A stretch of DNA of 64,000 nucleotides from the NCBI GenBank assembly GCA_964247055.1, contig OZ176057.1:2418001-2482000 (forward strand), in the 5' to 3' direction. The notes under the pieces were generated by a model. The model was not told where the DNA came from and searched no databases. It worked only from the letters and a program-made list of their open reading frames with translations. Made by a program: the position numbers and the translations under genes. Positions within the stretch are counted from its first letter, which is position 1; each line of letters opens with the position of its first letter. Origin of the DNA: Paragordius varius (Eukaryota; Animalia; Nematomorpha). Shown here one piece after another: positions 13,061 through 50,841 of this stretch.

Positions 13061-13107
13061 ATTTAAGCATATAAAATGGTTCCCAAAATACCTATTACTT
13101 AATTTAA

Positions 13108-20321: not shown

Positions 20322-23300
20322 TTATTGAGGTGGAGTTACTGTATACATTGATTTCGCTTCTTTCTTTTTGATGTAATAGCTTATTACCATGGCCACTCCA
20401 TAAATCTATTATTTTTATAGATGTAATAAAGCATTTAAAATTACAATTACTATCTAAATATAATTATAGATATATATTTTTTAAATACTACATCATTGCT
20501 TTTTGGGGTGTATTTCTACTGCTATTTAAGGTTTAAACCAGAGGTGTCTAACACAAATGGCTTCGAGGGCTGCATTTATCAAATACATATGAGCTGTAAA
20601 AAATATTATATACCATTTACAATTCAAATTCATCCCCTTGAACCATTCAAATTCACCCTTAAACAATAAATTTTACCCTCAAACAATTCAAATTCACCCT
20701 TGAACAATTCAAAATTTCCCTTGAACAATTTAAATTCACCCTAAAATAAATTATATGTTTTTTAAGATTAAAAATTACCTATGCTTTTATATATTTTTAT
20801 ATAAAAATAAAATTTTGTTTTAAATTAAAATAATATTGAAAAAATAATAAATTATGCCATAAGAAATATATCATATTAATAATGATTATATTAGTTTACT
20901 CATAATTTATTTTTAGGATCAATTTGAATTATTCGTGGGTCAATTTGAATTGCTCAAGATTTGAACTGTAAATGGTATATTAGATTACTAACATAAAATT
21001 GTAAAATGCAAACTCAAAAGTGAAATTTTGTTGTAGTTCTTGCCAATTATTGGATAGACTTATTTAGAAAAAAATTCTTAAGCTATAACGATTTTGTTAA
21101 GATTTTGTGAGCATATTTTTGTAAAATCCAAATTTTCGCGGGCCTCACTTAATCCCCTCAGAAGCCGAATGTTGAACACCCTGCTTAAGAATTATAAACA
21201 TCGCCAGTTATTTATTATTGATAGCCGGATTTTATATTCAGTAAAGAAATTCATTATTGAGGATTAACATGAGAAAGCATATTAAATTGAGGGTGTCCAA
21301 CACAAAGGGCCTACTGTGATATATATGGGACATTATTAAATATTTTATTATATATCAAACATAAGGCTGTCAAATACATAATAACATTGTTGATTATATA
21401 AACTTATTATTAGAATATTGATTTTGCTAAAATTTTATGAGCATATTTTTGCAAATTATGGATTTCCAAATTTTTTATTTAAATTTTAGGAATACATTCG
21501 TAATTGAATATGTAAACTAACATATGTCTATATCACTATGTTAAAATAATTGTAATTTTTTTCCAAGATTATAACAATGGGTAGTAAGTAGTTTTATCAA
21601 TCACATTATTAATTAATATGCTCCACTTTGCGGATTAAAGTATTTTTATGAAAGGTTTGATTGATTTATATTGTTTCAAAAATTATTTAATATTCATTTA
21701 TACTTTTTTGAATAAATATTATATATTCAAAAAAGCTTACCAGAATTAGCGCCATAAGGATGCTAGATATACCATTGCCTAAAATGCCAACGGAATCTCT
21801 CTACAAATTATAAAACATTTTTTTTTTCGTAATAATTAATGACTTAAAAAAATAATTTTATATAGTGAGAGGTTAATGCAAAAATTATACCGAATAAATT
21901 AGATTTATGAGCCCAGATATAATCATGATGGTTATTGCTTTGGGTAATGTAACCATCCATGGCATAAATAAGTGTCGCCTATTCTATTTAATAAAAGTAA
22001 TAAAAAAATTAAATTTTAGATGAATTAAATAATCTACGTTTATTAAGTTACAATGTCGAAAATAAAAAGTGTATTTAAAAGTCTCTTTATGGGTGTAGAA
22101 TAAAATGAATTTATAGTTTTTTTGGGCAAATTAATTTATTTTGCGATTTCATCAAAAACTTGTACGTAAACAAATAAGTTTATATGCACCAATTTATATT
22201 CTTTTTAACGAAAATTGATTCTCTGTATATTAAATTTAAAATTGCCATATATAAAATATTCAGACGGCAACTTGTTTTTATATGTTTTTAAGAATCGCAA
22301 CAAAATAGTTTATTTGATTTAACACTTTGTGACTCTTTTGGGTAATTTTATATCCCAGAGCGATTTGAATTCATAAACTTAAAAATATGACTTTAGCCTT
22401 TTAGGCGCCCAATATATTTTTTTGTTAAAAATGTAAATTAATAAAATCCTCATCTCAAACATTTTCAGCTTTAATTTTAAAAAAATTTATATCACTAATA
22501 AAGTAGGCAATAAAATAATGGTTATGATAATTATTAACTCAACTAAGTTAAAGGATGCCTTTTTACCAGTAAAAATTCAATATTTATTAATCTTAAAACA
22601 GCTGTTTAGTTCAATTTCAATCATGTGTGTTGGAACTGTCCCAATTTTAGTCTCTTAAGGTTACAAAACTATAAGCTTTTTTATCTAATACAGGAGAACA
22701 ATGTTTGATGATTAAATTTTATCTAAAACAATTATTAAAATATAATTTCGTTACAAAATTGTCGGATATAAAACTAACTCAATATGTCACCGCGAACAAA
22801 AAAGTTAAAAGGCATTTAGTGTTAAAAAGGCAAACTGAATGAAATGGATACTTCATTAATTATAAATATAAGAATACCTTACTGAATAAATTCCATTGAG
22901 AAGTGCTATTGAAGTTGCGACCATAATGATTGAATAAAACAAGTTTATTGACCATGCTATGTTAAACACTTGAACAAAAAAAACATTAATACATATTATA
23001 AAAATGAAATTTTTTAAACAAAAAAAAATTAAATAATAAATACTTTTTCCCTCTTTCCGGGTCCATAAATTGGGATAATTGTTACGAAGGCGATTATACC
23101 AAACAAGCATAAATATGCGTGTAAACACATCTATCACAAAATAAATCTAAACAGAAATGAAAATTTTTTTAATACAGTCATGTATCCTTCCTTTATTATA
23201 TCAAAAATTTATTTTTTTTTCGTTAAATGACTATATATGGTAAAGAATGGAAAAAACACGAGCTCTATGGTATTAACATCATATTTACAAGAATTACCAT

Positions 23301-24008
23301 AGAGCTCTTATTTTTTCCATTCTGTAACAAATATTTATACCCGTATAACGAAAGAAAATAAATTTTTGATAAAATAAAGGATACATGACTGTAATACCGT
23401 AAAGAGAGCTTTTATTCTTCATTTTGGTATTTTAATTGGTTAGGAGGGGTTATTTATACGTTTGTTGCCATATATGAGATTTTTCGTTTTTATTAGGTAT
23501 ATATTAGAAAATTGTGCAATTTTTTTATTAAAATATATAAAGAATGAAAAAAAAATCTTATTCATTGTAATATATATGCAATTTAAACCCCTTTTACCCA
23601 TTTATAATAACGGAAATGGCTATAATAATAGCTCTCGTTATTATACACTAAAAAATTCAAATTAAACATTATTTAATTTTGAGACGAATTCGTTTCAATA
23701 TTGAAAAAAGTGCGCATAATACCCATATATTACAGTCTAAATTTATATTGCTTGTTTTGTAGTAATTTTTGCCAGACAGCCCTATAAAACAAAGCAGTTA
23801 TTTTTTCACCAATATTAAAGCATCTTGCTATTTATGCCATGTGGCAACATTATTCAATATAAAACCAGCAATGTAAAATTACTCAAACTGTATTTTTTTT
23901 TTAAAAAAATTATAATTGTTATAAAATTACCAGGGTGACATATGACGTCAGAATAGCCCCAAATTTAAGCGGAAAGCAAAAAAGAAATTTTTGTAAACAA
24001 AGGCGCAT
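20322..24008 (-). CDS. Four-transmembrane membrane protein, LAPTM4/DUF4728-like, paralog A (167 aa)
   Basis: Exons 24008-23931, 23146-23044, 22968-22883, 21983-21891, 21800-21741, 20405-20322, all GT-AG and in phase. Protein MRLCLQKFLFCFPLKFGAILTSYVTLIYFVIDVFTRIFMLVWY..IALLNGIYSNRRHLFMPWMV..IYGVAMVISYYIKKKE..PPQ has four hydrophobic spans, an N-terminal CFPL.G motif and a G....R..L.PW motif. Confidence 0.82.
20539..21183. mobile_element. hAT-type MITE family D with a nested family A copy (20613-20975)
   Basis: CAGAGGTGTCTAAC...GTTGAACACCCTG termini; family A inserted in the TA-rich interior. Other D-like copies at about 21288, 25220-25431, 32659-32789 (TSD ttttagaa/ttatagaa), 49087-49325, 50399-50650 and 51307-51595. 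Confidence 0.75.
23175..23391. mobile_element. Tc1/mariner-like hairpin MITE family B
   Basis: TA|CAGTCATGTATCCT...AGGATACATGACTG|TA; nearly the whole element is an inverted repeat with AGAGCTCT in each arm; copies 34251-34496, 37934-38072 (internally deleted) and 48707-48940. Confidence 0.9.
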
Positions 24009-24822
24009 ATTTTAACTAATTAATCTTAGGGGGAAAATAAAATACTAAATCAAAATTAAACATAATAATGGGAAAGATTTATGTGTATAGTTATATAAAA
24101 TAAATGTTAAGATCCAAAATCCTTCCAGGTATATAGAAAATATATGATATTTACCCGTTTTTTTACGTTGTATTTTATTTTCAATTGTTTTATTATTCAT
24201 TACATCATTATTTTAAATAGATTTTAGTATGATTTCCTATATCAAAATAATCTTATAATATAACTGTTACTTCTATTTTCTCGATTAAACCACTATCATC
24301 ATGATTGTAATTATTTATTTTAGCCAGCCTGGGATCACAACCAAAACCGTCAATGTTCCTTGGTTCACAAATAAATTTTTTATGGCAATATCCATATTTG
24401 TGAAAAAAGCAATCTAATTATAACATGTTACATTGCACAAGAATTAGAAAAATGGTTTCAGTTTTCGTAGAGCTAGATAACGTAGTAAAAAAATGATTAA
24501 TATATAAAATCTATATTTTCAAGGTTATAAAAAGTAGAAATTATTTTTTTACGATTAACCGCGATAGGGATTTTACTGTTGGGTTTAAGCCTATATTAAA
24601 ATATATGTTAAGCTTTAAAATGGTAAATAGTCCATTATTAAAAATAACAAATTAGCGCACATATGGTAAATAAAATTCTAACAGGTTCACTTTAATATTT
24701 TAAGAGAAAAACAATATCAATAATTCAATTCATTTATTAGGTATGGAAAAAAATTCAATTTTGTCATATAATTCTTATTTTTCCATAACAATTTTTATAT
24801 GTACAGTGGACCAAACCAGGGA

Positions 24823-24854
<32 letters not shown>

Positions 24855-26444: not shown

Positions 26445-27975
26445 CACTTCGGTTCAAATTTGGGTATGTTAATACCTCAAAAAAATTTAAGTTGGTATTT
26501 TAAAAAAATACTGAAAGAAACGGTATCAATTTATTATGCTTCCATCCTAATAAAAATTATATAATACCGTATTTGCTAAATAAAACTTAATTTTGGTGCC
26601 ATTTTTATTTTACAACATCTTTGCAAAATATCGTGTTTATTTAACACTTCGATTCAAATTGGGGTATCTAAATACCCCAGACTAAATTTGAGTTAGGATT
26701 TTTAGAAAACTACTGAAGGAAACGGTCCCAATTTAAATTTATGCCTATATCCTAATAAAAATTATATAAATATGCCAAAATATCTAAATAAAATTTTGTT
26801 TTGAAAAAAAAGTTCCATGTCAAACTACTTTCCGCCATTATTACAAAATTTTGCAAAATATCATTTTTATTTAATTCTAACGTTAAAATTAAAGCTAATT
26901 TTTATTTAATTACATATAACATTGATAGATATAGAAAAAGCTGTTTATTTAGAATTATTTTTCAATTTTACCATTGCACGCATGTCACGTTGACTATTTT
27001 TTTACCTTTCGGTTTTAGCTTAAAAAAGTAATATCAAGTATTTTTGAAATAAATTTTTTATATATTTGGGTTTGTTAATGTTATATAAGTGCAATATTTT
27101 GCCATGGTTGCGATTCCTTCCAAATTTTTTTAAGAATTTAATTTTGAACAGGCCTGGGGTATTTAACTACCCACATTTAAATCGAAGGACTAAAATGAAT
27201 GTATTGTATCAATTTTAAAGCCAAGAATTAAGATGAATTTTTATTTACACATCCATTGATAGAAACATAAATGTGGTTTAATTTGTATTTTTTATTAGTT
27301 TATCGATTGCGCACATGTCATTGACCAAAATTTTACCTTGTGGTTTTACCTTAAAATAAGTAAAATTAAGTATTTTTGATGGTTTATTAAATACTTTGGT
27401 TTATTTATGTTATAGATGTGCGAATTTTTGCCATGGTTTCAATTCATATATGAATTATTTTTTTTAACACGCCTGGATCCAACTACCCCACTTTGAATCG
27501 AAGGACTGAAATGAATGTGTTGTATCCAAGTAAACCATGGGAAAATTTTGACCCATTAAATCAAAATACATAAAAAATTTTATTGATAATGTAAAACCCA
27601 AAGGTAAAAATTCAGTCAACGTAACATATGTGATTTCGCTAAACGGAAAAATAATACAAAATAAACCACTTTATCTATTTCTATCATTGTTAAATATAAT
27701 TTAAATAAAAAATTAACTTAAAATTTAACGTTATAATTAAATTAACACGATATTCTGCAAAAATTTTGTAAAAAAAAATGGCGTCGAAGTAGTATGACAT
27801 GGAACTTTTTTTTCAAAACAAAATTGTACTTAGATACTTTGGCATATTTATATAATCTATATTAAGATAAAAGCAGAAATTCAAATTGGGACCGTTTTCT
27901 TAAGTAGTTTTTAAAAATGGTGATTTAATATTAGATTGGGGTATATATATACCCTAATTTGAATCGGTGTTAAAA
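26445..27975. mobile_element. Cluster of three family F piggyBac-like MITEs (one nested, one inverted)
   Basis: Copy about 26445-27532 is interrupted at a TTAA by a copy at 26645-27210; an inverted, truncated copy at about 27545-27970 follows tail-to-tail. Confidence 0.8.
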
Positions 27976-28206
27976 TGATTTACTTTAGTAGCTCATATGG
28001 TTTACAGCTGGCTAATTGATTTGTCATATGTTACGGCCTTACTCTCAGTTGCTAGTAGCATTATCGCGCCCACTTTCTTTTTTTGCATAATTAATTAATT
28101 ATCATCCTTATTTCGATATCAAATTATTTTATTTTTCTATTTGTATTTTGGATTTTTTGATCGCCTTACTAAGCAAATCAAGGGTTAGGATAAAAAATAT
28201 TAAAAT

Positions 28207-31200
28207 ATGCCAGTCTCCAGTAATTTTGGAAATTTGTCAAATAATGTTTCATCGGGAGCCAATTGCTTTACCGGATTACCTACCAATACTCCATTATATA
28301 TGGCCGCTGAAAAACCGTTACATTTAACGTAAGTCAAATCTCTATTTAGTTCTTATTTTAAAATTAATTGTAATAGAAATGTTATAAACTTGATCGATAT
28401 CCTTAATTTCCCAATATATATCCTAAATTCATTTTTGTTATATAACCCTTATCCCCAAAATATTTATAATGTATTTATATAGTTACTTATCATACACCAG
28501 TCCATAGCATTTATAAAAGTCATTTTTTTACTTTATTTTGCAAGCAAAAGCTATAATATAAAGCATAACAACATTCCACATTGTTTTTATTTTTTTGCAA
28601 AAATTGTAGTTATTTATTGGATTTTCGTACCGAACAATGCCAACTTTTCTTGAAGCACAAATGTAATCGACACAGACCCTACACCTGTTTTTATTGGCAT
28701 TTTGCCAATCAAAGACGCAGAAGACCGCTTAAACTTATGGTTTCTGGGAATTTTAATTATCACGCTGATATTTATTGCGCAACGTATGACGAGGCCACTG
28801 GCTTATGCCCCACTGGTGACACTTGTCCTTTTTTGCATCGCACATCAGGGGACACGGAACGTCGATATCATTTACGCTACTATAAAACGGGTATGACAAA
28901 GATAAATTTGATAAAAGTTTTTCGATTCGTAACGATAATTTACGGGATGGAGTTTTGATTTCTATTTGCATTGAATTGTGATAAGTTTTTAAATGTTTAA
29001 AGGTGGATTTTTTATGTTAATCTATTAAATAATATATTTGTACATCAAGAATCTTGGTTAATTGTTTAATGTTTTTAACAGTTTTTTAAATTATTTAAAA
29101 TATTGCAATTAAGCGTTTTGTGTGAATTCATATAATAAATAATCAACTTAATATGAAGAAGTTAATAGCTTATGGTTCACATTAATACATAGTTATAATG
29201 CTATTCATAAATATGGCATGATATTTGTGGTATTCAAACGTTAATAAAAAAAGTTTTTTTAAAAAAAGTGTAAAACGAGTATTGTATTTCAAATTTTTAT
29301 ATAAAATTATTTGACAACCTCTTCAATCTATAGCCATTGGTGCTCATAAAGATATAGGGTTGACTAAAAAGGCTAAGCAGAGATTTGGTATCTATAAAAA
29401 TGTAATAAACATAAGAAATTACCTATTTTTTGGTCTCTAGAATACTGTGTTCATGAAACGGATACCAGAGGATTTTGCGTTAAGAATGGGGTTCATTGTG
29501 CTTTTGCTCATGGAACTTTAGATCTTAGAGAACCCGTAATGTCAACGGATGAAATTATATTGGACGAATTTATCCAGCGAACTTTATCGAAACACGTTTT
29601 ACAAAATTGTCTGCTTTTACAACAACAGCAACAAACACAACAATCGTCTGCCCCCGGCTCAACTAATCAAATAAAAGCGATAACAACCCTAACTTCAGTT
29701 TCAGATTCTAATTCAAAGAACGTTCCTAATAATTTTAATTCAAAAAGTTCTAGTAATGATTTTTTGGCCTCTGTACTTTTGAATTCAACACCTGATGGTA
29801 ACGAGTTGACAAACTTTAAAACGCAAAAAGCTAATTTTCAAGCTGCAATAATAACTACAAGAGGTACTAAAGACACAAGCACGATAGAAAATTCAAAATC
29901 TAATTCATGCTTATTGCTCGCAAAATGCGCCCCCAATGATACTTCTAGTCAGCTTTTATCCGTTAGTTTTTCCAATAATTCATTTGCTTTTGCATCATCG
30001 CAACCTTCTTATGCATGTTCTTCTACGGCTCAATCAAGTAAAAATATTAGTTTTTAAATATAATAATCTTGTTACAACTTCATTCATTATTTTATGATTA
30101 AAATATTAACCCAATTAGAAGACGATCCTATTGTTGTCATGAGAAATGCTAATAAATCCACCGTTTTCCCAAATTTCAATAACCTAAATAATGTATTACT
30201 GAGTTGTAATGGATTAAATCCAAATAAAACAAAAGATGACGAAACCCAAAAGTTATTCAATAATGAAAATAAAATGCCGAAACTTGAAACATCAGTATTA
30301 TCTGGAAACGTAACTATTAATGGATGCATATCACGAATTCCAAAGTATTTTAAATTGGCTTATTAGCTTTAGCTTTTTAAGGGCTTTTTTGATTAAATAT
30401 ATTAATTTTCTGATTGAATCCATAATTTATCCAAACGCATTATTTTGGTTAAATATGTATTTTTATGCTTTTTTTCCATATTTGACCATATTAGTATCAA
30501 TGGGAATTTCACTTCAAACTTTTGTAATTTACCAACAACACACGTGAAGCCATTCGTTGATTATGCTCTTACTGATGGTAATAACAATAATAATAATAAT
30601 AATAACACTCATAATAAAAACATTGTTAATAATAATTTATGTAACAATATTAACAATGATAATTTTTTTCTCGAAGACAAACCATTAAATACGATGATGG
30701 CCTTAGACGGAAATTTTCCCATGAAATGTTTAACGGAGAGTTTGGATTTAAGTGCTTTGGTACAAAATTGTTCTCGGCTTTTAATGGCTCAAAATCTGTC
30801 AAATAATTCCGCAAATGCTTGCGTCAAAGAAAATTCCAATATTACTGCAAATAATAATACGACTGAAATTGTAAATGATAATAAATGCCTATCTGGAGCT
30901 TTGGAAACCAAAGGACCCTTTATAAATGGAATTAGTAAAAATTTTAAGCTTCTCTTTTAAAACATTATTTTTTAACCTTATTTTTTTCTGTTTGTAGGTA
31001 AAAATTTTACCGTTGTCGAAAATGGTCAGCTTCCCTTTACATCAACAATGCTTAAAAGATTTGATGGACATTCAACATTACCCGAAAATATGAAGTATAG
31101 AATGGGGTACTTTTAAAAATAATTTTTTGATATCGCCTTCATACCCTATTTTGTTCCTTTCAAAGGAGGTAAGCAAGCCTGTTAGAGTTTTTATTTTTTG

Positions 31201-38148: not shown

Positions 38149-38205
<57 letters not shown>

Positions 38206-40141
38206 TAAAAATGAATTGTAAGTTTCTCTAACCAATAAAACATTGTTTAACATTTGGGGTTAAATTGGTGCATAAACAGCCAAGAATAATTGTTTTTTTT
38301 TTGGCCCCTTTTAGAATCTGAAAATTATGGCATAAAGAATGGAGCTTTGGGGGGAGGAAATACATTAGCTTTTAATCCAGAATTCTCTATGAATAATACA
38401 AATAGCTTGGAAGATTGTTTTACTGAACATCATACCAAAAATGAGGCCAATGTTAATTTTACGACAAAAAATATCGCGAATAATGATGACTTTTTTTCTA
38501 AAACAATCGGCGGGGCAATAAAACTAAATCCTTGGTTATCACAACCGAATGTTAAAGCGCCATTAGAAAATAGAGCAGTAAGTTTATATATATTCCATTT
38601 ACAGTTCAAATTCACCCTTGAACAATTCAAATTTACCCTTGAACAATTCAAATTCACACTTAAAATAAATTATGTGTTTTCGTAAACTATTATAAATCTT
38701 TAACTATATAAAAAATATAACTTTATGGCATAGTTTATTATTTTTTCAGTATTATTTTAATTCAAAACAAAATTTTTATTTTTTAAAAACATATATAAAA
38801 TTATATAGGTAATTTTTTATCTCAAAATATAATATATTTTATTTGAGGGTGAATTCGAATTGTTCGCGGGTGAATTTGAATTGTTTAAGAGTAAATTTGA
38901 ATTGTAAATGGTATACTAAATTACAATAAAAATAGAATTATACGGACAAACAGTAAAGATAAAGGGGAATATTATGAAACTCATTTTTTCTTACTTTTGA
39001 ATAACATTCATAGTTGACATAATTAATTTTGTTATCAAGAAAGATAATATATTACTTTGGGCAATATTAAACAACAATGGCAAAGTTTTAAAAAAGTACA
39101 GCAGTCCCTTGAAGATAACATTTGTCTTTATATAATCTTACGTTTTGTCCTGTTTTCTTCATAAAATTTTTATTTAATTTTGTTGCTAATAATGATAGAT
39201 TGTGCCCACAAACATGCCAATACTTAGTATGGATATAAATAATGCCTCACTTTTTTCCAATAACAACGCAATATATTCTGCCGGTTTTTTAAATAATCTT
39301 ACGACAACTACCTTACACGATAATAAACTGTGCGAAAATCAATCCAAAAATTTCATGATAACCAATAAAAAGGATGACATAAATAGGTTTATGTATGAAA
39401 ATCTAAATAATAGCACCCTTAGTCCGACTCAACAAGCCGATATACTAAAGGTTCGAATGGACGAAATAAAGGCAGTCCTTCAACAAATGGAAGTGGTATA
39501 TATATAAATCAATTTTTACTATTGACGAAGGATTGATTCAACAACTTATCATGTCATTTAGTATTTTTAGTTTAAATTTGTAATTTTGCATATCGATTTT
39601 CAGTTAATTTCCAATTTAAGTTTTGTTTATCATCATTACACGGAAAACAGTTGTTAATATACTAAGGTTTATAATTTTACGCATTCAGTATAAAAATTGG
39701 TTTTCTAATTATTCAGTATAACCAGAGTTTTTAAATTTTGATATTTTAAATGGTTAATAGGAGATATTTGGTTACAATTCCGTTGTCATATATGACATTT
39801 TTTATTTTATTAGTTGCATATTTAGTTTGCCTATGTATTTTTTCCTCATAATTTTGACATGTAACTAATAAAATAACGAAAGTATATTAAATTTTCGTTT
39901 AGCTATTTAAAATAATCAAATAATGTATTTTGTAATAAAGTATGTGCATGATTTATTATTTAAAAGTTTTTTTTATTATCAGTTTTGATGGTTATATCAA
40001 TACATAATCAATAGTTACTATAATGCCATGTTTATTAAAAATTTCCGTATATTCATTTAGGCTCTAAATACAGTTCAATCTACGAATGTCGCAAATTTAA
40101 CACCAATAACCACTTTAAGCTCCAATGTGCAAAACTTTTAA
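28207..40141 (+). CDS. unk: Unkempt CCCH zinc-finger RNA-binding protein (about 1278 aa)
   Basis: 17 phase-consistent exons: 28207-28328, 28610-28890, 29441-30037, 30119-30344, 30495-30934, 30998-31094 (or 31106), 31726-31913, 32853-32895, 33360-33472, 34731-34866, 35937-36054, 36559-36643, 36765-37400, 37717-37830, 38315-38577, 39199-39495, 40061-40141. All six unkempt CCCH fingers are intact (FRTEQC..HRPYTCFYWH, GDTERRYHLRYYKT, YKTEVCTKPPRLCRQGYACP, HTRTEQQFHPE, CPRGPFCAFAH). Confidence 0.95.
35552..35859. mobile_element. MITE family A copy in unk intron
   Basis: Full termini, 21-bp arrays, (TA)n flanks. Confidence 0.88.
36052..36400 (+). repeat. Tandem 90-bp repeat that copies the unk exon 11 splice donor
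   Basis: AGAGGT(A/C)AAGGGCAAAAAATT at GT positions 36055, 36145 and 36235 (90-bp period), plus a fourth copy at 36378 preceded by a degenerate copy of the exon end (AATTTCATCCAGAG). Confidence 0.9.
38595..38911. mobile_element. MITE family A copy just downstream of an unk donor site
   Basis: Full termini and arrays; starts 17 nt after the exon end at 38577. Confidence 0.88.
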
Positions 40142-41662
40142 GAAGAAATTGATTAAATGTTTACGAGGCTAACTTATAAACAGTATTATTAATATATTTT
40201 TTTCATTATATTTTGACAATTATATAACACGCATCATACATTGTCAACAAAAAAAGGAATCTTGTGCGTTTTTGCTACTTAATTTTTTTACAAATGTTTT
40301 TGATTATTTACTACAGTATTACAGTTTTTGAGAACCTTCTCTCATTTCAAAAGTATTAACGTTTCCAATTATATTCCTTATTTGATATGTTCAATGCAAT
40401 ACAAAACTTGAATTTACAATTTGTACCTTATTATATAAATCATTTACTAATCACTTTTCATATTTTTACTTGATAACTTTTTAGAATTCAATAACTATTA
40501 TAACCATTAGTAATTATATAGGAATATAGATTAACTTGTGTTAGTTTTGCATTTATCATTGTATACCGTGTTCAACTAAATTTTTATTAGCTCTTAGTTA
40601 CTGACTAAAAAAATTTAATTCTTCATTTCTATCTCATCTTTTAAACTATTCCCTAAGATTTTTTAGGTTAGCTGGATTGATTTAGAATGCGTAACCAAAT
40701 ATTTAGTTATAATTTTGTTTGGAACTAGACACACACTACACACTATGTTCATTTTATTTGAAATTTTTAAATATATACATATATCTAACAAAAAAACAAT
40801 TATTAATATGTATGGAGATGTAATATCGAACGGAATTTATAGGATATTTATGACTTAACATGTAATAAAATTAACAAATTTTTAGTCTAGCTCTGCCCAC
40901 AATAAATGAAATAAATTTTAGCTAATCTTACATTATTCTTCATATTATTATTATTTTGTACACATATATATGACTTTAGCTAATATGCGCCCTATTTTCA
41001 TGTATACTGTCCTATATCCCGATATTTACAATCAATATTTTTATTTACGGTATGAATTAAAATACATTGCTGGTTTTTTCATTCAATATTGATAGATGTC
41101 GGCATTCACAGTAAAGAAAAATATTCTTGACATAAAATTATACATTTTTTCGCCATTTTCCTACTATTAGTCAATAATTATTATTCTCTTTGATGTGCCT
41201 GCTATCATCGGATTATATTTAATATAAAAAAACTAGTAATGTATTTCATACATCTAAACTGTAAATCGAATATATGTATAGTTTTATGTAACACTGGATT
41301 TATATATTTTAGTTTTTTTATAAACAAACCACCCATATTTTACTATTGTGATATTTTTGATTGTACAAAATTATTATAATTAACACCATGTTGTGTAATT
41401 ATTTTTTTTGCAAAATTATTTTCCAAAAAACTCACTTTTTTCCTCTCTCTCTTTTAGCATTTTCACAATTTCATTCTTGTATATATTGCATGCAGTATTT
41501 TATTTCGTCCATCGTTGTGCTTTTTTCATTCATTGTACAAATTAACTACGCATTTTATTTTATGCTAACCCCACACCTTTCATTCAATGTATACTAATTT
41601 GCTTTGCTTGGTGTTTTATTAACTATACCTTTAATAAATAAATGAATAATAATAAAAATATA

Positions 41663-42475
41663 CCATTTACAGTTTAGACTTTAGATTAACCCTTGTACAA
41701 TTCAAATTCACCTTCAAACAATACTAATTCACCCTAAAAAACCATTGTGTTTTCGAACTTATATAACTCATTATTAATCTATATATTTATAAAAATGGAA
41801 AATGCTGGCTTTGTGATCTGTTTCTGAAATCGGTAAACCCATTCAAATCCAAATATCGAAAAAATATAATCCTTAAAGAATGCCCCGACAATAGCTTCAC
41901 CCTTTTTTGAATTAGGCCCCCAGCTCAGTTCCACACCGTGTAAAAACCGGTTTTTTTTATTTGAGACAATTTTCCGGAAAACGGTTGGACCATTCAATTT
42001 CAAATATGATTTTTGTTTACTTATTTTCGATTGCGCCGAACATTGTCGGCTCACTTTTTTAATTTAAGCCTTCTTTCCCTCCCCCCATAAAATGCCTTTG
42101 TTTAAAAAAACAAAGTCCACAAAAATAATTTTTTGTATCTATTTTTCGCCCAAGTAAACAATATATTAGTATAAATGCACCGTTTTGAAATTTCTATGAG
42201 ATCATAGTTATTAAATAATGTTTCGAAATAATCCACATATGTGGATCATTTTATTGTCCCTTTTTCAAATAGTACCCCCACCCCCAGAAGTCCGAATGAC
42301 TTACTCGGGCTGCGTAGCACGAGATTTACGCTAGTATGAAATATTTTTATGGCATAGTTTTTTATTATCTTTTCAGTATTATTTTAATTTTTTAACAAAA
42401 TTTTATCTTTTAAAAATCATAAGTAATTTTTAATTTTAAAAAACACATAATTTATTTGAGGGTGATTATTGTAAA
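41663..42475. mobile_element. MITE family A copy split by a Helitron
   Basis: Family A consensus ..ATAACTCATTATTAA|TATGAAATAT.. is interrupted exactly at the A|T. Confidence 0.85.
41778..42334 (+). mobile_element. Non-autonomous Helitron, full length (557 bp)
   Basis: 5' TCTATATATTTATAAAAATG; 3' GC-rich hairpin followed by ATTTACGCTAG; inserted at A|T with no TSD. Confidence 0.92.
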
Positions 42476-43866
42476 ATAAATGTTATATATAGATATATAT
42501 ATACCAGGGTTTCAAGCGATTCCGCTGGCTTTTGCACAGTTAAAATAGGTAAAATTAATATTAGTAAATCATTATTATAGTTGTCATATTTTTCGAAACT
42601 TAGGATAATCTTGAACCAGGCTGCAGAAGCAAAAATTCTTTGTATCTGGTATTTATTATCGATCAAAAACTAGAAAAAAAGTTTACATATTTATAAATTT
42701 AATAATTAAACAAAAATTTAATATTAGAAAAGAATATTAACTGTTATAAAAGAGAATTTTATTCTCTATCCATTTAAATATATGAAAACAGGATAAATTG
42801 AAATAATACGGACAAAACATAAGAAAAACAAGACAATTCTTTTTAAAAGACAACCATACTTTTCCCTAATTTTTCCTTTTAGGAAATCATAATTACAATC
42901 GTCGTGAAATAAACACATATTTGATTGTATTAATAAATTTACATGTCTATTGCACACTCTGCACAATGAATTATTTTAAAATACCAAAGTATAAAAAGTG
43001 TGGGTTTGTCTTTTGAAAAAATTATCTTTATACGTTTTCGTATAATTTCAATTTTATTGTAATTTACCCATATAATGGTTTATTATAAAAATTGATTTTT
43101 TAAATAGTGCTCTATAGAAATTATTGAGGTTCGACCCATTTATATAGGATATCATGATATATATTTCATCGGAATAATTGCGTACAAGGGTATTATAAAA
43201 CATTTAAGAATAGTTTTCACATTTAGAAATATTATTATAATTTCATTTTTTGCTCTCGCTTCAATTAAACCGAAATTCAAAAATGTCCAATATATGAGGT
43301 GGTTCTAGAGTTGATTTTTTTGACATACATATAAATAGTGATGATATAATTTAACAAAATAATCAATTTATTTTACTTTCTTTTTTATTAAAATAACATT
43401 TGTATAAATTAAAATATTTAAGATTAACTCATAATGTTTTTTGCTTATTATTATATATTGAAGCATGTAACTCTGGTGCACATATTTTAAGATGGCTTTC
43501 ACAGAGGCAGCCCTTCAATATAGTATGTGCGGTGAGCGATTAACTTGGAATTCTAGTATAACTCATAAACTCTTAGTAAAATTGATAATTTACATTAAGT
43601 TTACAAAGAATTAGTGTTATAATAGGTGTGCATTTTACAGTTTTATGTTTAAAAGCTAATAAAGTATTTAGGCATGCTCATATATATGAATAGGCATTAT
43701 TTTTTTGATAATTATTATCTTAAATGCAAAAGGATTTAAAGTAATTTATCAATATAATTCAGAAATGGAAAACAATTGTAAATATATTTTGCCAATATTT
43801 TTTGACATTTAATCCAACTAGTTTCTAGGATATAAAACATTTAATTAAATAAAATCAAGAGATATG

Positions 43867-44894
43867 GGGTAGGGTGATAAAAAATATTTTTTGACTTGAC
43901 TTGAAATTTTCAAGTCATGGCTTGCTTTCATGTGATAAAAAAAATTTAACATTAGGGCACTTAAGTCAAGCGAGAAAACTTGATAAGGAGGTGATAAAAA
44001 ATCATATGTTCAAGTAAAACTTAAAGATTTTGCAAGTGTGGTGTGGGGCACACTTGACAGATTTAAAAATATGGATAAAATTATTTTGGGAATTATTTAT
44101 GTGCAAAATTTAGGTTTTATATGTAATTCAAACCTTTATTAATTCTATAAATTGTTAATTTGATAAATTTTGGCTAATTAATCTATTCATTGGGTGGATA
44201 CAAAAGAGGATAAACTTATAGAAAAACTCTGCTAATATTAAATAACATGGCACATAAAAATATGCTAAATATATCGATTCTGTGACCGCAAAAAAAATTG
44301 GATTCTCGAAAATTTCTTAAATTAATAATTAAATATTTATTTTGTGATTTCAATTCATTTATTAAAAGCAAAACTTCACTTTTATACAATATAAAGAATT
44401 TCTTTCATCATAAATTTATTTCGTATGTAATGTTTATAATCAATTAAAAATAATTATGTTATATTGTATAAACATCTTCCCATTATATTTGCAAATGGAC
44501 TCCAACAAAATGTAGTGTGATAAAGAAATGGAAAGTGTTTTAAGGGCGAATGGTTTCATTAATCTAAAAATTATTACCATGCTCCATATTTAAAAAAATT
44601 CTATAATATTAAATAAGATACTTGCCAATGTTTTATGAAAAAGGTCATTAAATGCATATTGTATTAATTTATCTTTTCATGCCTTATTTCATAAATTTTG
44701 GCTGAAAATGATCAAAATAATTTCTGTAAAATTCGAATTGGGTGGCAAAAAAATGTTACATTCATAAGCTAAAGACTTGACTTAAGTGTTTTTTATCACC
44801 GATCTTCAAGTGTACACATGCTGGCTTAGGTAAACTTGCTCAACTTGCCACGCTTGACTTACAAGTCAAGTGCGACTTTTTATTCACCCCACCC
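43867..44894 (+). mobile_element. Unclassified DNA transposon family C, copy 2
   Basis: GGGTAGGGTGATAAAAAA...TTCACCCCACCC; collinear with 18918-19861; right end abuts the interior of a truncated Helitron. Confidence 0.85.
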
Positions 44895-45270
44895 AATTTT
44901 CCGGAGAACGTGTTGGACGATTCAATTTCAAATATGATTTTTGTTTAGTTATTTCCGTTGCGCCGAACATAGTCGTCTCGCTTTTTTAATTTAGACCTTT
45001 TTACCCGTTCCCCCCGTAATATGCCATTTTTTAAAAAAACAAAGTCCATAAAAATAATTTTTTGAATCTATTTTTCGCCCAAGTAAACAATATATTAGTC
45101 TGAATGCACCGTTTTGAAATTCCTATGAAATCGTAGCTATTAAATAATGTTTCGAAATAACACATATGTGGATCATTTTATTGTCCCTTTTTTTCAAATA
45201 GCCGCCCTTCCTCCCCCCAGAAGTCCGAAGGATTTCCTCGGGCTGCGTAGCAGCACGAGATTTACGCTAA
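44895..45270 (+). mobile_element. 5'-truncated Helitron
   Basis: 3' two-thirds of the 41778-42334 element, with hairpin and CTAA|T end. Confidence 0.85.
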
Positions 45271-45678
45271 TATGTTATAATTAAATAGCTTTTTTAACAA
45301 ATGTGGATATTAAACCATAAAAAAATTTATTTGTGAACCAAGGAACCATTGACGGTTTTGGTTTTGATCCCTAGCTGGCTAAAAAAATAAGTACAATAAA
45401 GATGGTGGTTTTAATCAAGAAAATATAAGTAACAGTTATATTCATAAGATTATTATGCTTTAAGAAATCATACCAACATCTATTTGAAAAAATGATATAA
45501 TGAATGATTGAACAATTGATAATAAAATAAAACGGGAAAATATCATATATTTTCTATATACCTGGAAGGATTTTGGATCTTAACATATATTTTATATAAC
45601 TATACACATAAATTTTTCCCATCATTATGTTTAATTTTTATTTAGTTTTTTTTCCTCCTAAGATTAATTAGTTAAAAT

Positions 45679-48600
45679 ATGCGCATTTGTTTACAAAAAT
45701 TTCTTTTTTGTTTCCCGCTTAGAGTTGGAGCGATTCTGACGGCATACGTCACCCTGGTAATTTATAACAATTATAAAATATTTTTTTTAAAAATACAGTT
45801 TAAGTAATTTTACATTGCTGGTTTTTCATTGAATAATGCTGCCAGATGGCACAAACAGCAAAGAAGCTTTAATATTGGCGAAAAAACTACAGCCAATAAT
45901 ACCCTTTGTTCTGAGCTATCTGGAAAAAATCACTAAAAAAACAAGCAATGTATATTAAACTTTTACTGTAACACATGGAAAGTAAACTAATATGCATACT
46001 TTTTTCAATATTCAAGCGAATTTGTCAACAAATTAATTTTTTAAATGTTTAACATTTAAATACAACACATTCATTTTCGTCCTTTGATTCAAATTGGGAT
46101 AGTTAAATACCCCAGGCCTGTTTAAAATTAAATTCTTCAAAAAATATGGAGGAATCGAAACTATGGCAAAATTTTGCACTTATATAACATTAATAAACCG
46201 AAATATATAAAAATATTTATTCAAAAATACAAGATATTACTTATTTTAAGCTAAAATTGAAAGGTAAAAATTTGGTCTTTGTAACATGTGAGCACTAGTA
46301 AAATTGAAGAATAATACAAAATAAACCGCTTTTTCTATTTCTATCAATGTTAGATGTAATTTAAATAAAAAATTAGCTTTATTTTTACCCTTAAAATTAA
46401 ATGAGAACGATATTTTGCAAAAATTTGTAAAATAAAAATGGCGTAGAAGCAGTTTGACATGGAACTTTTTAAAAAAAAATTTTATTTAGATATTTTGGCA
46501 TATTTATATAATTTTTATTAGGATAGAAGCATAATTTAATTGGGACCGTTTCCTTCAGTAGTTTTTTAAAAACCTTAAATCAAATCTAGTCTGGGTTATT
46601 TAGATACCCCAATTTGAATCGAAGTGTTAATATGAATTTTTTTATTGCAGTAACGAGAGCTATTATTATAGGCATTTCCGTTATTATAAATGGGTAAAAG
46701 GGGTTTAAAATTGCATATGTATTGCATGCATGAGATTTTTTATTTCATTCTTTATAAATTTTAATAAACACTTTCCAAAATTTTTTAATAATATACCTAA
46801 TGAAAGCGAAAAATATCATATATGGCAACAATCTAAATCAGTGATACTCAAACCGCGGCCCGCGGGCCGCATGCGGCCCTAAGAGTGCCTTAAAATTGCC
46901 CTATGACCATATTGATACTTAAATTATTTTTTTAACAAAAATTTTTTTCAATTATTTTAATATTGATTTATTTTCTTTAGATTTAATTTTGGTAGTCTTT
47001 ATTTTTTACCCAATTCGAAATGTAAATTTTTTTTCCATGATTTCAAAATTTTGGCACACGTTGATTCTGTATTCTATTTTCTTTTCTTTGAAATTTTTAT
47101 TGCATTCCTTTTTTGTATTTTAACAAGCCTTTCTCAACTTGCATATACATATTCATTTCATTGCTATCCTGCATCATTTTTTATAACTCATTCCCATTAA
47201 TTATTTTTCAAATCAACATCATTAAATTTCGATCTGTTTTTTTAATAATTCAAATTATATTCCAATTTTTTTGAAAAAGATTTACATAACATTTAAACAT
47301 AAATTCAAAGGATGACATCTAATGCTAAAAAACGTAATTTATCCGATGAATATCGCTCCTTAAAAAAAAGAATGGGAAGAAAAATTCTTTGTCGTTTTAG
47401 TAAAAATGTTGGTATCTGCCTTATATGTAAGAGCAACTTAAAAAATACAATATTGAAAAACATACAATTGAAATATACAAAGGATTTATTCCTCTGTTGA
47501 AAAACATATAATTTACAAAATATTTTATCCTTTCAATGCTATTCATAAAACTTGATTTCACATGTAAAAGATATATCCTTCAATTCAGTAATTAAAACAG
47601 TTGTTGATATACTTAACCACATCCGTAGCAGAGAATTCAACTGCCGTAAATTCAAAAACCTTCTGAAAGATATCCACAGTGAGTTTGATTATATTACATT
47701 GTACACCGCTGTGAGATGGCTAAGCCTTAGCAAAGTATTAAATAGATATTTTGTTTTAAGATATCTATTATTCATAAAAGATAACAGAAAGTTTGACGAG
47801 GAAATTAATAGTGACATATGGTGGGTTTTATTATCCTACCTTTGCGACATTACTCATAAACTTTTTTAATACGTCGTCAAATTAAAAAATTAATAATATA
47901 AACTAGATTTTATAAAATAAAACACTCCAATATTTTCCTGAAGAAAATATGGAATTTACCGCGGAGATTAATTTAATAATAAATCACATAACATTTTTAT
48001 CCAATGTTATAATCAGATTTCAAAAATTAAAATATATAAAAATTGCTTAAAACTCGCTGAAAATCCATGGCATATGAATATATTCAATATTAAACAACTT
48101 GAGCATTTCGGTTTTGATCAGGCGCATATCATTGAAGACTTCGTAGGTTATAAAAATTCCAATTTGGATATTTAAAGAGAAGCGTAGAGAAGAAAGATAT
48201 GTAGAGTTTCGGTGAGATGTCCCAAATAAATATGAAAAAAATTTTCTCAAATTATCCTAACTCTTTTTGCCTCAACTTATACGTGCGAGACGTTATATTC
48301 AAAAATAAAATATGTCAAGAATACATACAGAAACTGCTTAACCGATGATCATATGGACGACGTATAAAGATTGGCTCATGAGGGTAAACCAAATTTGTCA
48401 AAAAATATTGGTTAATATCGAAATAAAAATTGTATCAAAATATTTTATTTTTTTAAACTAAATGGTAAACCAGTTTCTAGCTGGATTTACATGCGATCCG
48501 CAAAAAATTCATTGTGCTGATTTAGAGTATAAATATATGCATATGTGTTAAATAATATTTGCCATTATAAGGTTCATGGCCCTAGAAAAAAATATATATT

Positions 48601-50841
48601 TTATTTGGCCCGTCAAATTTTTTTGGTGAGTACCACTGATCTAAATTATCCCTCCTAACCAATTACAATACCAAAATGACCAATAATAGCGCTCTTTACT
48701 GTATTACAGTCATGTATCCTTTATTTTATTTTTTTTCGTTATACGGGTATAAATATTTGTTAAAGAATGAAAAAACAAGAGCTCTATATGGTATTAAAAA
48801 TATCATATTCATATAAAAAGTATATAAATTACCATACGGCTCTTGTTTTTTCCATTCTTTACCAAATATTTATACATGCCCATTTAACGAAAAAAAATAA
48901 ATAAATTTTTGATATATAATAAAGAAAGGATACATGAATGTATTAAAAAACTTTTCATTTTGCATTTAGATTTATTTTGTGATAGATGTGTTTACACGCA
49001 TATTTATGCTTGTTTGGTATAATCGGCTTCGTAACAATTATCCCACTTTATGGACGCGGAAAGAGGGAAAAAGTATAATTTAATTCAGGTGTTATCAATC
49101 CAAATGGCTTTGCGGGTCGCATTCGAAATATATATAGGCATTCATAGATAATTTATTAAATTTTAAACATTAAACATCAAAAAAAGCTGACAACAATTTT
49201 TTTCGTTCTTGCTATTTGAATAGACTTATCGAAATTCTAGATAAATCAATTTTACCAGATTTTATAAACATGTTTTTCAAATTACGGTTTCCAAATTTAT
49301 AACGGGCCGCTTGTTAGTCACCCTAGATTTAATCTTTTGTTTGAAAAAAAATTAAATTTTCATAATTTGTATTGATGTTTTTTTGTTCAAGTGTTTAACA
49401 TAGCATGGTCAATAAACTTGTTTTATTCAATCATTATGGTCGCAACTTCAATAGCACTTCTCAATGGAATTTATTCAGTAAGTTATATTTATTTTTATAT
49501 ATTTACAAATACTTGCCAGTTTCAATCTTGTTTAAATATTGGGTTTTGTGAAAGATCTAATATTATATTTGGTGTCATCTTAAAAAAAATTAAGAGTATA
49601 TATTGCAATAAAAGCGAGTTGTCGTCTTAAATATTTTTTCATAAGGCAATTTTATATTTAATATACAGAGAGTCAATGTTGGTAACAAAGAATATTAAAT
49701 TGGTGCATATAAAATTATTCTAATATTTGCTAAGAGCAGAAAAATTATAAATTCCATATACCATTTTTTTCCACATCCATAAAGAGAAATTTAAATAAAC
49801 TTTTTACTTTCGACATTGTCACTTAATAAATTTAGATTATTTAATTAATCTAAAATTCAATTTTTTGGTTACTTTTATTATACAGAATAGACGCCACTTA
49901 TTTATGCCATGGATGGTTACATTACCCAAAGCAATAACCATCATGATAATATCTGGGCTTATAAATCTAATTTATTCGGTATAATATTTTGCATTTACCT
50001 ATTATCATATAAAATTATTTGTTCAAGTCATCATTACGAAAAAAAATGTTTTGAAATTTTTAGAGAGATTCCGTTGGCATTTTAGGCAATGGTATATCTA
50101 GCATCCTTATGGCGCTAATTCTGGTAAACTTTTTTAAACATATTACATTTATTCAAAAAAGTATATCAAACCTCTCATAAAAATACTTTAATCGCATAAG
50201 ACGCATAGTAATCAATAATGTGATTGATAAAACTACTTACTACCACCTATTATTATACTCTTGGGAAAAAATTACAATTATTTTAACATAGTGATATAGA
50301 CATATTTTTGTTCACATATTCAATTACCTGATGTATTCCTAAAATTTATTAAAGAAAAATACATTTTGGGTTAGTAGAAGTTATTCTAAACTCTAAAGCA
50401 GGGGCAGCCAACACGCGGTTTGTGAAAATTTGGAAATCCATAATTTCAAACATATGCTCACAAAATCGATATTGCTCACAAAATTTTTTTATATATAAGT
50501 CTATCCAATAATTGGCAAGAACTACAAAAATTTACTATATTACGTTTGCATTTTACAATCCTATGTTGGGAATCTAATATAATAATTATTACTACCCATA
50601 TGTATTAGACAAATGCGGCTCTCGAAGCCATTTGTATTAAAAGCTGTGGAAATCGACCACCAAAAAGCAACGATGAAGTGTTAAAAATATATTTCTATAA
50701 TTATATTTAGATATTCATTGTAATTTTAAATGCTTTATTTCATCTATGTAATAGATTTATGGATTAGCCATAATGATAAGTTATTACATTAAACAGAAGG
50801 AAGCGAAATCAATGTATACAGTAACTCCACCTCAATCATAA
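45679..50841 (+). CDS. Four-transmembrane membrane protein, LAPTM4/DUF4728-like, paralog B (168 aa)
   Basis: Exons 45679-45756, 48970-49072, 49392-49477, 49886-49978, 50064-50123, 50755-50841, all GT-AG and in phase with no stops; same exon lengths as paralog A except one extra codon in the last exon; about 9 amino-acid differences. Confidence 0.82.
46053..46626 (-). mobile_element. piggyBac-like MITE family F in intron 1 of paralog B
   Basis: TTAA on both sides; the equivalent site in paralog A has a single TTAA. Confidence 0.88.
46839..48638 (+). mobile_element. hAT (Buster/SPIN/Charlie-type) transposon copy 2, internally deleted, decayed transposase
   Basis: Perfect 8-bp TSD ATCTAAAT (46831-46838, 48639-48646); CAGTG..CACTG termini; fragments VIKTVVDILNHIRSREFNCRKF..LYTAVRWLSLSKVLNRYF and LFASTYTCETLYSKIKYVKN..LTDDH. 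Confidence 0.92.

Follow-up and report, generated by a model that had tools for sequence, protein, structure and literature searches.

An inverted duplication around unkempt in the hairworm Paragordius varius and its two predicted four-pass proteins of the DUF4728/pasiflora family

Analysis of a 64,000-nucleotide stretch of the Paragordius varius genome (hereafter, the window) revealed a pair of genes, designated L and R, that flank unkempt in mirror orientation and are both transcribed away from it. The reading we favor, at a probability of roughly 0.8, is a young inverted duplication in which L and R are both intact under purifying selection and encode a predicted DUF4728/pasiflora four-pass protein. 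In the proposed history, a single-gene unit of ~4.6 kb would have been duplicated in inverted orientation, its copies now lying on either side of unkempt; ~10% divergence at unconstrained sites and different intronic repeat insertions in each copy would have followed, with both copies kept intact by selection.

A repeat search and BLAST disclosed that the left arm is the reverse complement of the right arm outside copy-specific repeat insertions (Table 1), with boundaries in agreement with those given by an earlier sequence-only reading of the same DNA (19862-24428 and 45272-51306). The BLAST segments form one collinear chain of 84-93% identity. The arms share 90% identity in noncoding sequence, and no identical run exceeds 98 nt. 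The duplicated unit consists of one gene with ~420 nt upstream and ~460 nt downstream, and the right arm is longer than the left because of the three R-only segments listed in Table 1. Among the best-kept noncoding stretches are the ~400 nt upstream of the gene, which are 92% identical. Only these two copies of the gene occur in the 110.5-Mb assembly (genome G+C ~25%), and no relics of further DUF4728-family copies were detected below E 0.05 in the rest of the window beyond the two arms. Scans of the full window for Rfam families and tRNA genes returned no matches, and no unkempt RING exon was found in 39.0-45.4 kb.

That the pair is an assembly artefact, with haplotypes collapsed or misplaced or a contig folded back on itself, is hardly credible. 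The arms are ~10% diverged and have several repeat insertions acquired independently; their arrangement is inverted rather than tandem, a unique unkempt gene stands in the 21 kb between them, and the 6.35-Mb contig has no N within the window. Fold-back errors instead yield adjacent, near-perfect palindromes.

Each arm holds an intact six-exon gene, as the sequence-only reading had proposed, with ends at 20322 and 50841 matching those in that reading: L encodes 167 aa on the minus strand and R encodes 168 aa on the plus strand. All predicted introns (10/10 over both copies) are bounded by GT..AG; the ATG, the stop and all ten splice sites are kept in L and R, and there is no frameshift. The frame of exon 2 was picked by phase continuity and by its differences between the copies, two synonymous and one replacement. 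An alternative frame, giving a more hydrophobic peptide, was rejected, since it is out of phase with exon 3 and would make each of the three differences a replacement.

Table 1. Positions of the duplicated arms, gene models, repeats and neighboring features in the window.
Feature	Position	Strand	Basis or remark
Left arm (whole gene, ~420 nt upstream, ~460 nt downstream)	19861-24430	-	Repeat search, BLAST, alignment
L exon 1 (ATG, 26 codons; N-terminus and start of TM1)	23931-24008	-	Gene model
L exon 2 (103 nt, ends in phase 1; remainder of TM1, loop 1)	23044-23146	-	Gene model
L exon 3 (86 nt; TM2), identical to R exon 3	22883-22968	-	Gene model
L exon 4 (93 nt; loop 2, PW motif, TM3)	21891-21983	-	Gene model
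L exon 5 (60 nt; first half of TM4), identical to R exon 5	21741-21800	-	Gene model
L exon 6 and stop (second half of TM4, V-x-S-Y-Y motif, C-tail)	20322-20405	-	Gene model
L-only insertion, intron 5, short dispersed repeat	20612-20975		Also at 35558-35864 and 38601-38905
L-only segments	~21098-21431; ~22282-22857		Arm comparison
Dispersed repeat abutting the outer edge of the left arm exactly	18918-19860		485 first-look candidates genome-wide; copy at 43867-44894
unkempt exon, zinc finger 1, between the arms	28581-28955	+	Pfam zf_CCCH_5, E 1.8e-18
Right arm, lengthened by repeat insertions	45268-51310	+	Repeat search, BLAST, alignment
R exon 1	45679-45756	+	Gene model
R exon 2	48970-49072	+	Gene model
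R exon 3	49392-49477	+	Gene model
R exon 4	49886-49978	+	Gene model
R exon 5	50064-50123	+	Gene model
R exon 6 and stop (one added codon, Ser)	50755-50841	+	Gene model
R-only insertion, intron 1	45887-46626		Kin of repeats at 13104-13681, 26641-27209 and 54886-55393
R-only dispersed repeat, intron 1	46832-48641		Many contigs; at least 40 scored copies, 733 first-look candidates
R-only segment	~49077-49326		Arm comparison

Comparison of the two copies showed 23 differing codons. The proteins differ by nine replacements and by one extra terminal Ser in R, the result of a 3-nt indel before the stop; synonymous changes number ~15. Exons 3 and 5 are nucleotide-identical, and exon 4 carries four synonymous changes and no replacement, just as had been read from the sequence. 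The clustering of replacements in the terminal exons, noted there too, was also found, with four in exon 1, one in exon 2 and four in exon 6, and so were the many intronic indels: 117 gap columns are intronic and 35 lie in the flanks, the only exonic gap being the indel at the stop.

The ratio dN/dS between the copies, a comparison put forward in the sequence-only reading, is 0.16. There are ~9.5 nonsynonymous and ~15.5 synonymous changes, against a neutral expectation of 78% nonsynonymous (binomial p = 5e-5), and a model in which one copy drifts freely (average omega ~0.55) is rejected (p = 0.002-0.007). These values and the intact frames support the earlier suggestion that both copies are maintained, and the coding sequences point to purifying selection on L and R alike since the duplication. 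We consider it improbable that one of the copies is silent or has become a pseudogene too recently to have gathered disabling mutations. Such a reading could draw on the 2.5 kb of repeat insertions in intron 1 of R and on the distribution of derived residues, which, with paralogues as outgroups, lie at positions 15, 16, 22 and 144 in L and at 147 in R. It is opposed by the preserved start, stop and splice sites, by the rejection of free drift and by the well-kept upstream sequence.

The clustering of 8 of the 9 replacements in exons 1 and 6 (compared with the internal exons, Fisher p = 6e-4), together with the additional C-terminal residue of R, could instead be taken to mean that L and R have acquired different functions and join as unlike subunits, each with its own cytoplasmic ends; cis oligomers are frequent in tetraspan families (PMC4582180). 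However, all nine replacements are conservative (L/I, K/R, F/V, S/A, N/T, V/L, M/I, V/M and K/Q), and at least four of them lie within TM1 or TM4 and another two where TM1 begins, not in the tails. The terminal exons are also high in synonymous change, and their omega of 0.21 indicates weaker constraint rather than positive selection. Because conservative exchanges within or next to TM1 and TM4 make up most of the replacements, the proposal of hetero-oligomerizing subunits with diverging cytoplasmic ends finds no support, and we regard it as quite improbable. Most likely, L and R would be redundant or would differ in expression rather than in biochemistry.

A further proposal held that the likeness of the exons is kept by gene conversion between the inverted arms and not by selection on the protein. 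Two observations favor it. Synonymous divergence is lower in the internal exons (6 changes over 76 sites) than in the terminal exons (9.5 over 35; Fisher p = 0.008), and exons 3 and 5 together (146 nt) hold no synonymous change where ~4.8 would be expected (p = 0.003-0.004, a post hoc value). The remaining data oppose it. Nowhere do the arms diverge more than in introns 2, 3 and 4 (JC 0.128-0.159), whose neighboring exons are the most alike, and the identical runs over exons 3 and 5 (98 and 67 nt) stop 3-7 nt outside the exons, although a conversion tract has no reason to track exon borders. Moreover, synonymous sites of the internal exons (7.9%) and noncoding DNA (9.9%) show no difference in divergence (p = 0.70), and exon 4 holds its four synonymous changes. 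Exon-biased conversion is not needed, and it is improbable as an account of exon likeness. Plain purifying selection on the protein, in turn, does not explain why exons 3 and 5, next to fast-diverging introns, are free of synonymous change altogether. A second layer of constraint could account for this, as either splicing signals in the short exons of a ~25% G+C genome or a transcript-templated conversion limited to exons; the combination of either with occasional flips of the 21-kb unkempt segment, leaving both orientations in populations, is a long shot.

In agreement with the four-TM character predicted earlier, hydropathy alone (Kyte-Doolittle) places four hydrophobic segments in L and R, at residues ~16-42, 63-85, 98-118 and 127-150. 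Loop 1 (~20 residues) is larger than loop 3 (~8 residues). Lys and Arg residues number ~9-10 on the proposed inner side (three in the N-terminus, two to three in loop 2 with the TM3 start, four in the C-tail) and six on the outer side, five of them in loop 1; the positive-inside rule thus weakly favors an orientation with both termini inside.

The same genome contains at least four more paralogues, giving a family of at least six members. P3 (C8:1761477-1768057) encodes 159 aa, 38% identical to L, and its exons of 78, 103, 86, 93 and 60 nt have the same lengths as those of L and R. P4, on contig C1, encodes 166 aa with exons of 75, 103, 86, 93 and 60 nt. Exon phases in both match those of L and R, so that the four fully modelled genes share one exon-intron plan through exon 5. 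P6, on contig C9, has an exon 2 of 106 nt with the same end phase and exons 3 and 4 of the same lengths; its exons 5 and 6 are fused, and its exon 1 was not found.

A profile of exons 2 and 3 searched against 5.8 billion clusters recovered one protein (E 6e-9), a 139-aa sequence from the hairworm Gordionus sp. m RMFG-2023 (P0001) that carries the Pfam domain DUF4728 (PF15860). Against DUF4728 it scores 37.6 bits, above the gathering cut-off of 26.7 bits. It is the orthologue of P6, not of the L/R pair, and its sequence spans the exon junctions predicted for P6. In a 133-aa alignment with this protein, L is 35% identical (E 1.8e-24), the sole gap being a 1-residue indel; the Smith-Waterman score lies 28 SD above 1000 shuffles. 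The blocks I-Y-F..TR, W-N-[RK], F-N..W, N-R..F.P-W-M, L-G.G-I and S-Y-Y follow in the same order in the Gordionus protein and in L and R. In a tblastn search of the 64-kb window with this protein, significant matches fell only on exons 2, 3 and 4 of both arms. The last exon of P6 by itself has DUF4728 as its best Pfam match (E 0.0015, 19.6 bits, profile positions 59-90 of 91), and in the ESM Atlas it recovered a weak DUF4728-containing cluster (rank 4, score 0.77), which we treat as a lead only.

Direct searches with the pair were less productive. Pfam gave no meaningful match for L, R or P3 exons searched singly (60-103 nt); for L and R, the exons are too short to score one by one. A 96-aa query made of L exon 2, the in-frame 75-nt intron 2 and exon 3 had no match in a protein homologue search, in HMMER of 1.84 billion proteins or in Pfam, and its only ESM Atlas matches were weak bacterial DUF1345 clusters, taken for noise. 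With the Gordionus protein as query, the database search returned that protein alone; no orthologue of the L/R pair itself appeared in the protein databases searched with the 96-aa stretch, the exon 2+3 profile or the Gordionus protein. A six-frame search of the whole genome with DUF4728 gave no match, but its controls were silent too, so this search is uninformative. Because the single exons and the 96-aa stretch are matchless, membership rests on transitive homology through the orthologue of a paralogue. By this route, the predicted L and R proteins belong to the DUF4728 (pasiflora) tetraspan family.

DUF4728 has been tied to the pasiflora family (PMC4582180; bioRxiv 10.1101/2024.04.13.589362), whose hallmarks are four TMs, a PW at the start of TM3 and VxSQYQ at the end of TM4, with no signal peptide and a small size (PMC4582180). 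The last of these motifs spans the TM4/C-tail border in Pasiflora1 orthologues and is shortened to VxS in Pasiflora2; the termini are intracellular, and the first extracellular loop is the larger (PMC4582180). We compared L and R by eye with the Pasiflora1 (CG7713) and CG13288 sequences in the supplement of that study. The proteins are alike in size (169 aa for Pasiflora1 and 167/168 aa here) and in their four TMs, and they share a PW at the TM3 start after a basic N-[KR]-R-H-L-type stretch, a V-x-S-.-Y at the TM4/C-tail border and, ahead of TM1, a Cys-rich N-terminal segment with R/K-x-G after it. The first outer loop of L and R, by comparison, is short. In both copies P97-W98 directly precede the third hydrophobic segment, and the PW motif recurs in P3, P6 and the Gordionus protein, with G-Y in its place in P4 and P5. 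The TM4/C-tail motif matches VxSQYQ only in part: it reads V-I-S-Y-Y-I in L, M-I-S-Y-Y-I in R, V-N-S-Y-Y-H in P3 and V-V-S-Y-Y-Q in P6 and the Gordionus protein. Its S and second Y are kept in every aligned member; both Qs are absent from L and R, and V is lost in R.

The sequence-only reading had called the proteins LAPTM4/DUF4728-like. Its DUF4728 part is upheld by the match of L to the Gordionus protein, and its LAPTM part, in the strict sense, is not. The Mtp profile (PF03821) matched no L, R or P3 exon searched singly (E up to 10), nor the Gordionus protein (E up to 1); the only genomic match lies on contig C6 (C6:1747813-1747965). LAPTM4/5 C-terminal tails carry PPxY/LPxY motifs. In the C-tails of L (final residues ..T-P-P-Q) and R (..T-P-P-Q-S), the prolines are not followed by Tyr, and neither motif is present. 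LAPTM4A and LAPTM4B resemble L and R in their four passes and in having, ahead of TM1, an N-terminal region rich in Cys, whereas the L and R proteins are ~65 residues shorter. In one preprint, the LAPTM4 proteins are placed with the pasiflora family, and fly CG15098 is reported to have an Mtp as well as a DUF4728 domain (bioRxiv 10.1101/2024.04.13.589362). The label "LAPTM4-like" thus appears only loosely supported for these predicted proteins.

The pasiflora family, distant kin of LAPTM4, includes core proteins of the Drosophila septate junction; of its nine members in that fly, only Pasiflora1 and Pasiflora2 have been demonstrated as junction components. By analogy with these two, the L/R protein probably serves as a small hydrophobic scaffold, packing against other membrane proteins in cis. 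A role in septate-junction-type complexes is plausible on the same analogy, if tentative; some other role is conceivable though doubtful, and a LAPTM-like endolysosomal role is unlikely.

The pasiflora family is present across protostomes and deuterostomes, in a list that does not include hairworms (PMC4582180), and a comparative study lists DUF4728 among arthropod-type novelties (bioRxiv 10.1101/112664). Our analysis indicates that DUF4728/pasiflora tetraspans exist and have multiplied in hairworms, adding a previously unannotated gene pair and a family of at least six members for a poorly studied phylum. Genes built of 60-103-nt exons are invisible to ORF-based annotation, and the L/R pair is a warning case. 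The pair itself is an ordinary gene duplication, a textbook young duplicate retained by purifying selection, that contributes new members to an already known family. If hairworm septate junctions use DUF4728/pasiflora proteins, these genes would offer a handle on epithelial barriers in a parasite.

The left (L) and right (R) arms, whose letters also denote the gene copy and protein of each, pair as one collinear inverted chain in both the repeat search and BLAST (84-93% identity per HSP), and a repeat comparison of the whole window found no homology past the arm ends in its remainder. The window is very AT-rich (G+C 20-31% in 2-kb bins) and contains no N. The R arm exceeds the L arm by ~1.5 kb, and each carries segments absent from the other, so the sequence-only reading was right to pair the arms after discounting TE insertions. 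At least 40 scored copies of the 1.8-kb R-only segment, a dispersed repeat, occur across many contigs, and an 815-nt high-copy repeat ends flush with the L arm's outer edge. Two copies of a high-copy repeat of ~0.8-0.9 kb lie in the window in direct orientation, one directly adjoining the L arm's outer end, the other 370 nt inward of the R arm's inner end. Because these copies sit at or near the arm ends, the present boundaries may have been set in part by later repeat insertions. The halves of the 1.8-kb repeat are ~600 nt further apart in most other genomic copies, so the R-arm copy looks internally deleted; it includes a 105-aa ORF that had no Pfam match.

Exons were identified by reading the gap-free conserved L/R blocks in three frames, followed by phase joining. 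This predicted one six-exon gene per arm from the genomic sequence, with GT..AG introns in 10/10 cases across both copies and the 5' ends directed towards the 21-kb middle segment, such that the two genes are divergent. Two frames of exon 2 are open, and we chose the one that is phase-continuous with exon 3, in which two of the three L/R differences are synonymous; the other breaks the phase and turns all three into replacements. Hydropathy disclosed four hydrophobic segments at ~16-42, 63-85, 98-118, and 127-150. The predicted models are strongly supported, since paralogues at 35-40% identity share their exon plan. The inverted four-transmembrane gene pair bracketing unkempt was described accurately from the sequence and is real; it arose by recent inverted duplication of a unit holding one gene. 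Intron 2 of L (75 nt) is in frame and stop-free, forming a 96-aa open frame with exons 2 and 3, and its retention would add 25 residues to loop 1; the R equivalent (319 nt) contains stops.

Features of the inverted duplication and related loci (window positions unless a contig is named)
Feature	Position	Strand	Remarks
L arm	19861-24430		pairs with R arm
R arm	51310-45268		pairs with L arm
L gene, exons 1-6	24008-23931, 23146-23044, 22968-22883, 21983-21891, 21800-21741, 20405-20322	minus	167 aa
R gene, exons 1-6	45679-45756, 48970-49072, 49392-49477, 49886-49978, 50064-50123, 50755-50841	plus	168 aa
L exon 2 + intron 2 + exon 3	22859-23146	minus	open frame
R-only segment	45887-46626		absent from L arm
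R-only segment	46832-48641		absent from L arm; 1.8 kb
R-only segment	in intron 2		absent from L arm; ~250 nt
L-only segment	~20612-20975		absent from R arm
L-only segment	~21098-21431		absent from R arm
L-only segment	~22282-22857		absent from R arm
High-copy repeat	18918-19860		outer end of L arm
High-copy repeat	43867-44894		inner end of R arm
ORF in 1.8-kb repeat	47552-47869	plus	105 aa
unkempt zinc finger	28581-28955	plus	Pfam zf_CCCH_5, E 1.8e-18
Mtp exon	C6:1747813-1747965	minus	26.2 bits
P3	C8:1761477-1768057		159 aa; 38% identity to L; exons 78, 103, 86, 93, 60 nt, as in L and R
P4	C1:14681000-14690999		166 aa; exons 75, 103, 86, 93, 60 nt
P5	C9:2391000-2400900		near-copy of P4
P6	C9		exon 2 106 nt, same end phase; exons 3 and 4 of same lengths; exons 5 and 6 fused
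P6 extra exon-end copies	2870-2935, 3183-3338, 3549-3599 of locus L023		tblastn; 2454-3599 = C9 ~499450-500600

Comparison of L and R revealed no nucleotide difference in exons 3 and 5, four synonymous changes in exon 4, two synonymous changes and one replacement in exon 2, and four replacements each in exons 1 and 6; a 3-nt indel gives R its extra final Ser. By the Nei-Gojobori method, the joined models differ by 15.5 synonymous changes over 111 sites and 9.5 nonsynonymous changes over 390 sites (dS 0.154, dN 0.025, omega 0.16). Given this synonymous excess, neutrality is improbable (p = 5e-5), as is one copy drifting freely since the duplication with an average omega of 0.5-0.55 (p = 0.002-0.014). 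The noncoding alignment (2550 nt, 90.1% identity, JC 0.106) holds 152 gap columns, while the exons are gap-free apart from the indel before the stop. L and R are each intact and under constraint, and the synonymous excess, together with practically gap-free exons against gapped noncoding DNA, shows that selection on the protein has kept both.

The similarity of the internal exons had been attributed to possible exon-biased gene conversion, which is not needed to account for it. Synonymous differences in exons 2-5 (6/76 sites, 7.9%) are comparable to the noncoding 9.9% (Fisher p = 0.70), and divergence within the arms peaks in introns 2, 3, and 4 (JC 0.128-0.159), the stretches that separate the exons of highest similarity. 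Exons 3 and 5 are covered by the longest uninterrupted identical stretches (98 and 67 nt), which end 3-7 nt beyond the exons. These two exons show no synonymous changes where ~4.8 are expected; the post hoc p of 0.003-0.004 becomes ~0.05 after allowing for picking two exons out of six. Terminal exons 1 and 6 have a dS of ~0.33-0.34, roughly threefold the noncoding value of 0.106 (Fisher p = 0.002). This heterogeneity among exons may stem from constraint on synonymous sites where exons are short, or from the low counts involved.

The nine L-to-R replacements (L3I, K15R, F16V, S22A, N52T, V144L, M146I, V147M, K154Q) are all conservative and fall mostly in or beside TM1 and TM4, which lends no support to the suggestion of diverging cytoplasmic ends. 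Position 22 lies in TM1 and 144-147 in TM4, positions 15 and 16 mark the start of TM1, and 52 belongs to loop 1, which leaves 3, 154, and the added Ser as the sole changes clearly at the termini. Omega is 0.21 in the terminal exons versus 0.05 in the internal ones. The difference reflects weaker constraint at the ends rather than adaptive divergence, and the idea of hetero-oligomers with distinct ends finds no support.

Searches of Pfam, protein databases, and the Atlas used single exons or contiguous stretches as queries; joined models of L, R, and the paralogues were built from coordinates for dN/dS, hydropathy, local alignments, and tblastn, including on the window. Single window exons had no Pfam match, the 96-aa L stretch retrieved nothing from two protein databases, Pfam, or the ESM Atlas, and the DUF4728 profile had no match in the six-frame genome, where control profiles likewise had none. 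Exon 4 weakly matched a locus on its own contig at a distance of 650 kb, which led to the paralogue P3, and profiles of exons 3 and 4 yielded three more members (P4-P6). P4 and P5, on separate contigs, form another near-identical pair, both with G-Y instead of P-W before TM3. Exon 1 of P6 was not found at its locus. The 3' part of P6 exon 2 (~17-22 codons to ..R-I-R-G plus donor site) recurs three times downstream at ~330-420-nt spacing, giving the predicted intron 2 a tandem series of repeated exon ends with their donor sites.

A family profile of exons 2 and 3, built from every member with the 96-aa L stretch as alignment reference, matched one protein among 5.8 billion clusters (E 6e-9): P0001, 139 aa, from Gordionus sp. 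m RMFG-2023 (genome paper: bioRxiv 10.1101/2023.06.26.546503). P0001 carries a precomputed PF15860 (DUF4728) domain and scored 37.6 bits on DUF4728 against a 26.7-bit cut-off (E 3.7e-9); as a database query it found no further relative. It is the P6 orthologue, with 94% identity to the last exon of P6 and a sequence spanning the predicted P6 junctions. For that exon by itself, the top Pfam match is DUF4728 (E 0.0015). Across 133 aa, L and P0001 share 35% identity (E 1.8e-24), with a Smith-Waterman score 28 SD above 1000 shuffles, and a tblastn query with P0001 covering all of the window matched significantly only exons 2-4 of both arms. The match also supports assigning the genome to a horsehair worm with kinship to Gordionus. 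The L/R product is a DUF4728-family four-pass protein.

Of the original label, LAPTM4/DUF4728-like, the DUF4728 (pasiflora) half therefore stands, while LAPTM proper does not. According to a preprint, fly CG15098 combines Mtp and DUF4728 domains and is grouped with human LAPTM4A and LAPTM4B in a "tetraspanin-pasiflora" family (10.1101/2024.04.13.589362). Pasifloras, with nine fly members and reported orthologues in arthropods, molluscs, echinoderms, and hemichordates, conserve a PW motif where TM3 begins and a VxSQYQ motif on the border of TM4 and the C-tail (PMC4582180). L and R have P97-W98 directly before TM3 and end TM4 with V/M-I-S-Y-Y-I; V-V-S-Y-Y-Q-E-L-G-G in P6 and P0001 nearly matches, by eye, the deuterostome ending C-L-L-C-V-I-S-Q-Y-Q-E-L..G-R-G (PMC4582180 supplement). 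Neither P0001 nor the window exons, searched singly, matched Pfam Mtp (LAPTM family), the genome's only such match is one exon on contig C6, and the L/R tail contains no PPxY motif, which places the pair outside LAPTM proper. The C6 exon presumably represents the true LAPTM orthologue, distinct from the DUF4728 family.

In the middle segment, the unkempt locus is marked by its zinc finger 1; a RING-type Cys/His exon for the C-terminus was not found on either strand in 39000-45400. A strongly negative GC skew (-0.217) marks 40001-42000. The arms are ~88-90% identical overall with a longest identical run of 98 nt, and recombination flipping unkempt, as had been envisaged, is possible in principle and should be inefficient.

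Pasifloras have been proposed to associate in cis in septate junctions (PMC4582180), and by analogy the L/R protein is probably a small hydrophobic scaffold associating in cis with other membrane proteins; a LAPTM-like endosomal role seems less likely. The ~400 nt upstream are shared at 92% identity, and L and R probably started out under a common promoter. The simplest reason for keeping both copies would be redundancy, dosage, or expression divergence.
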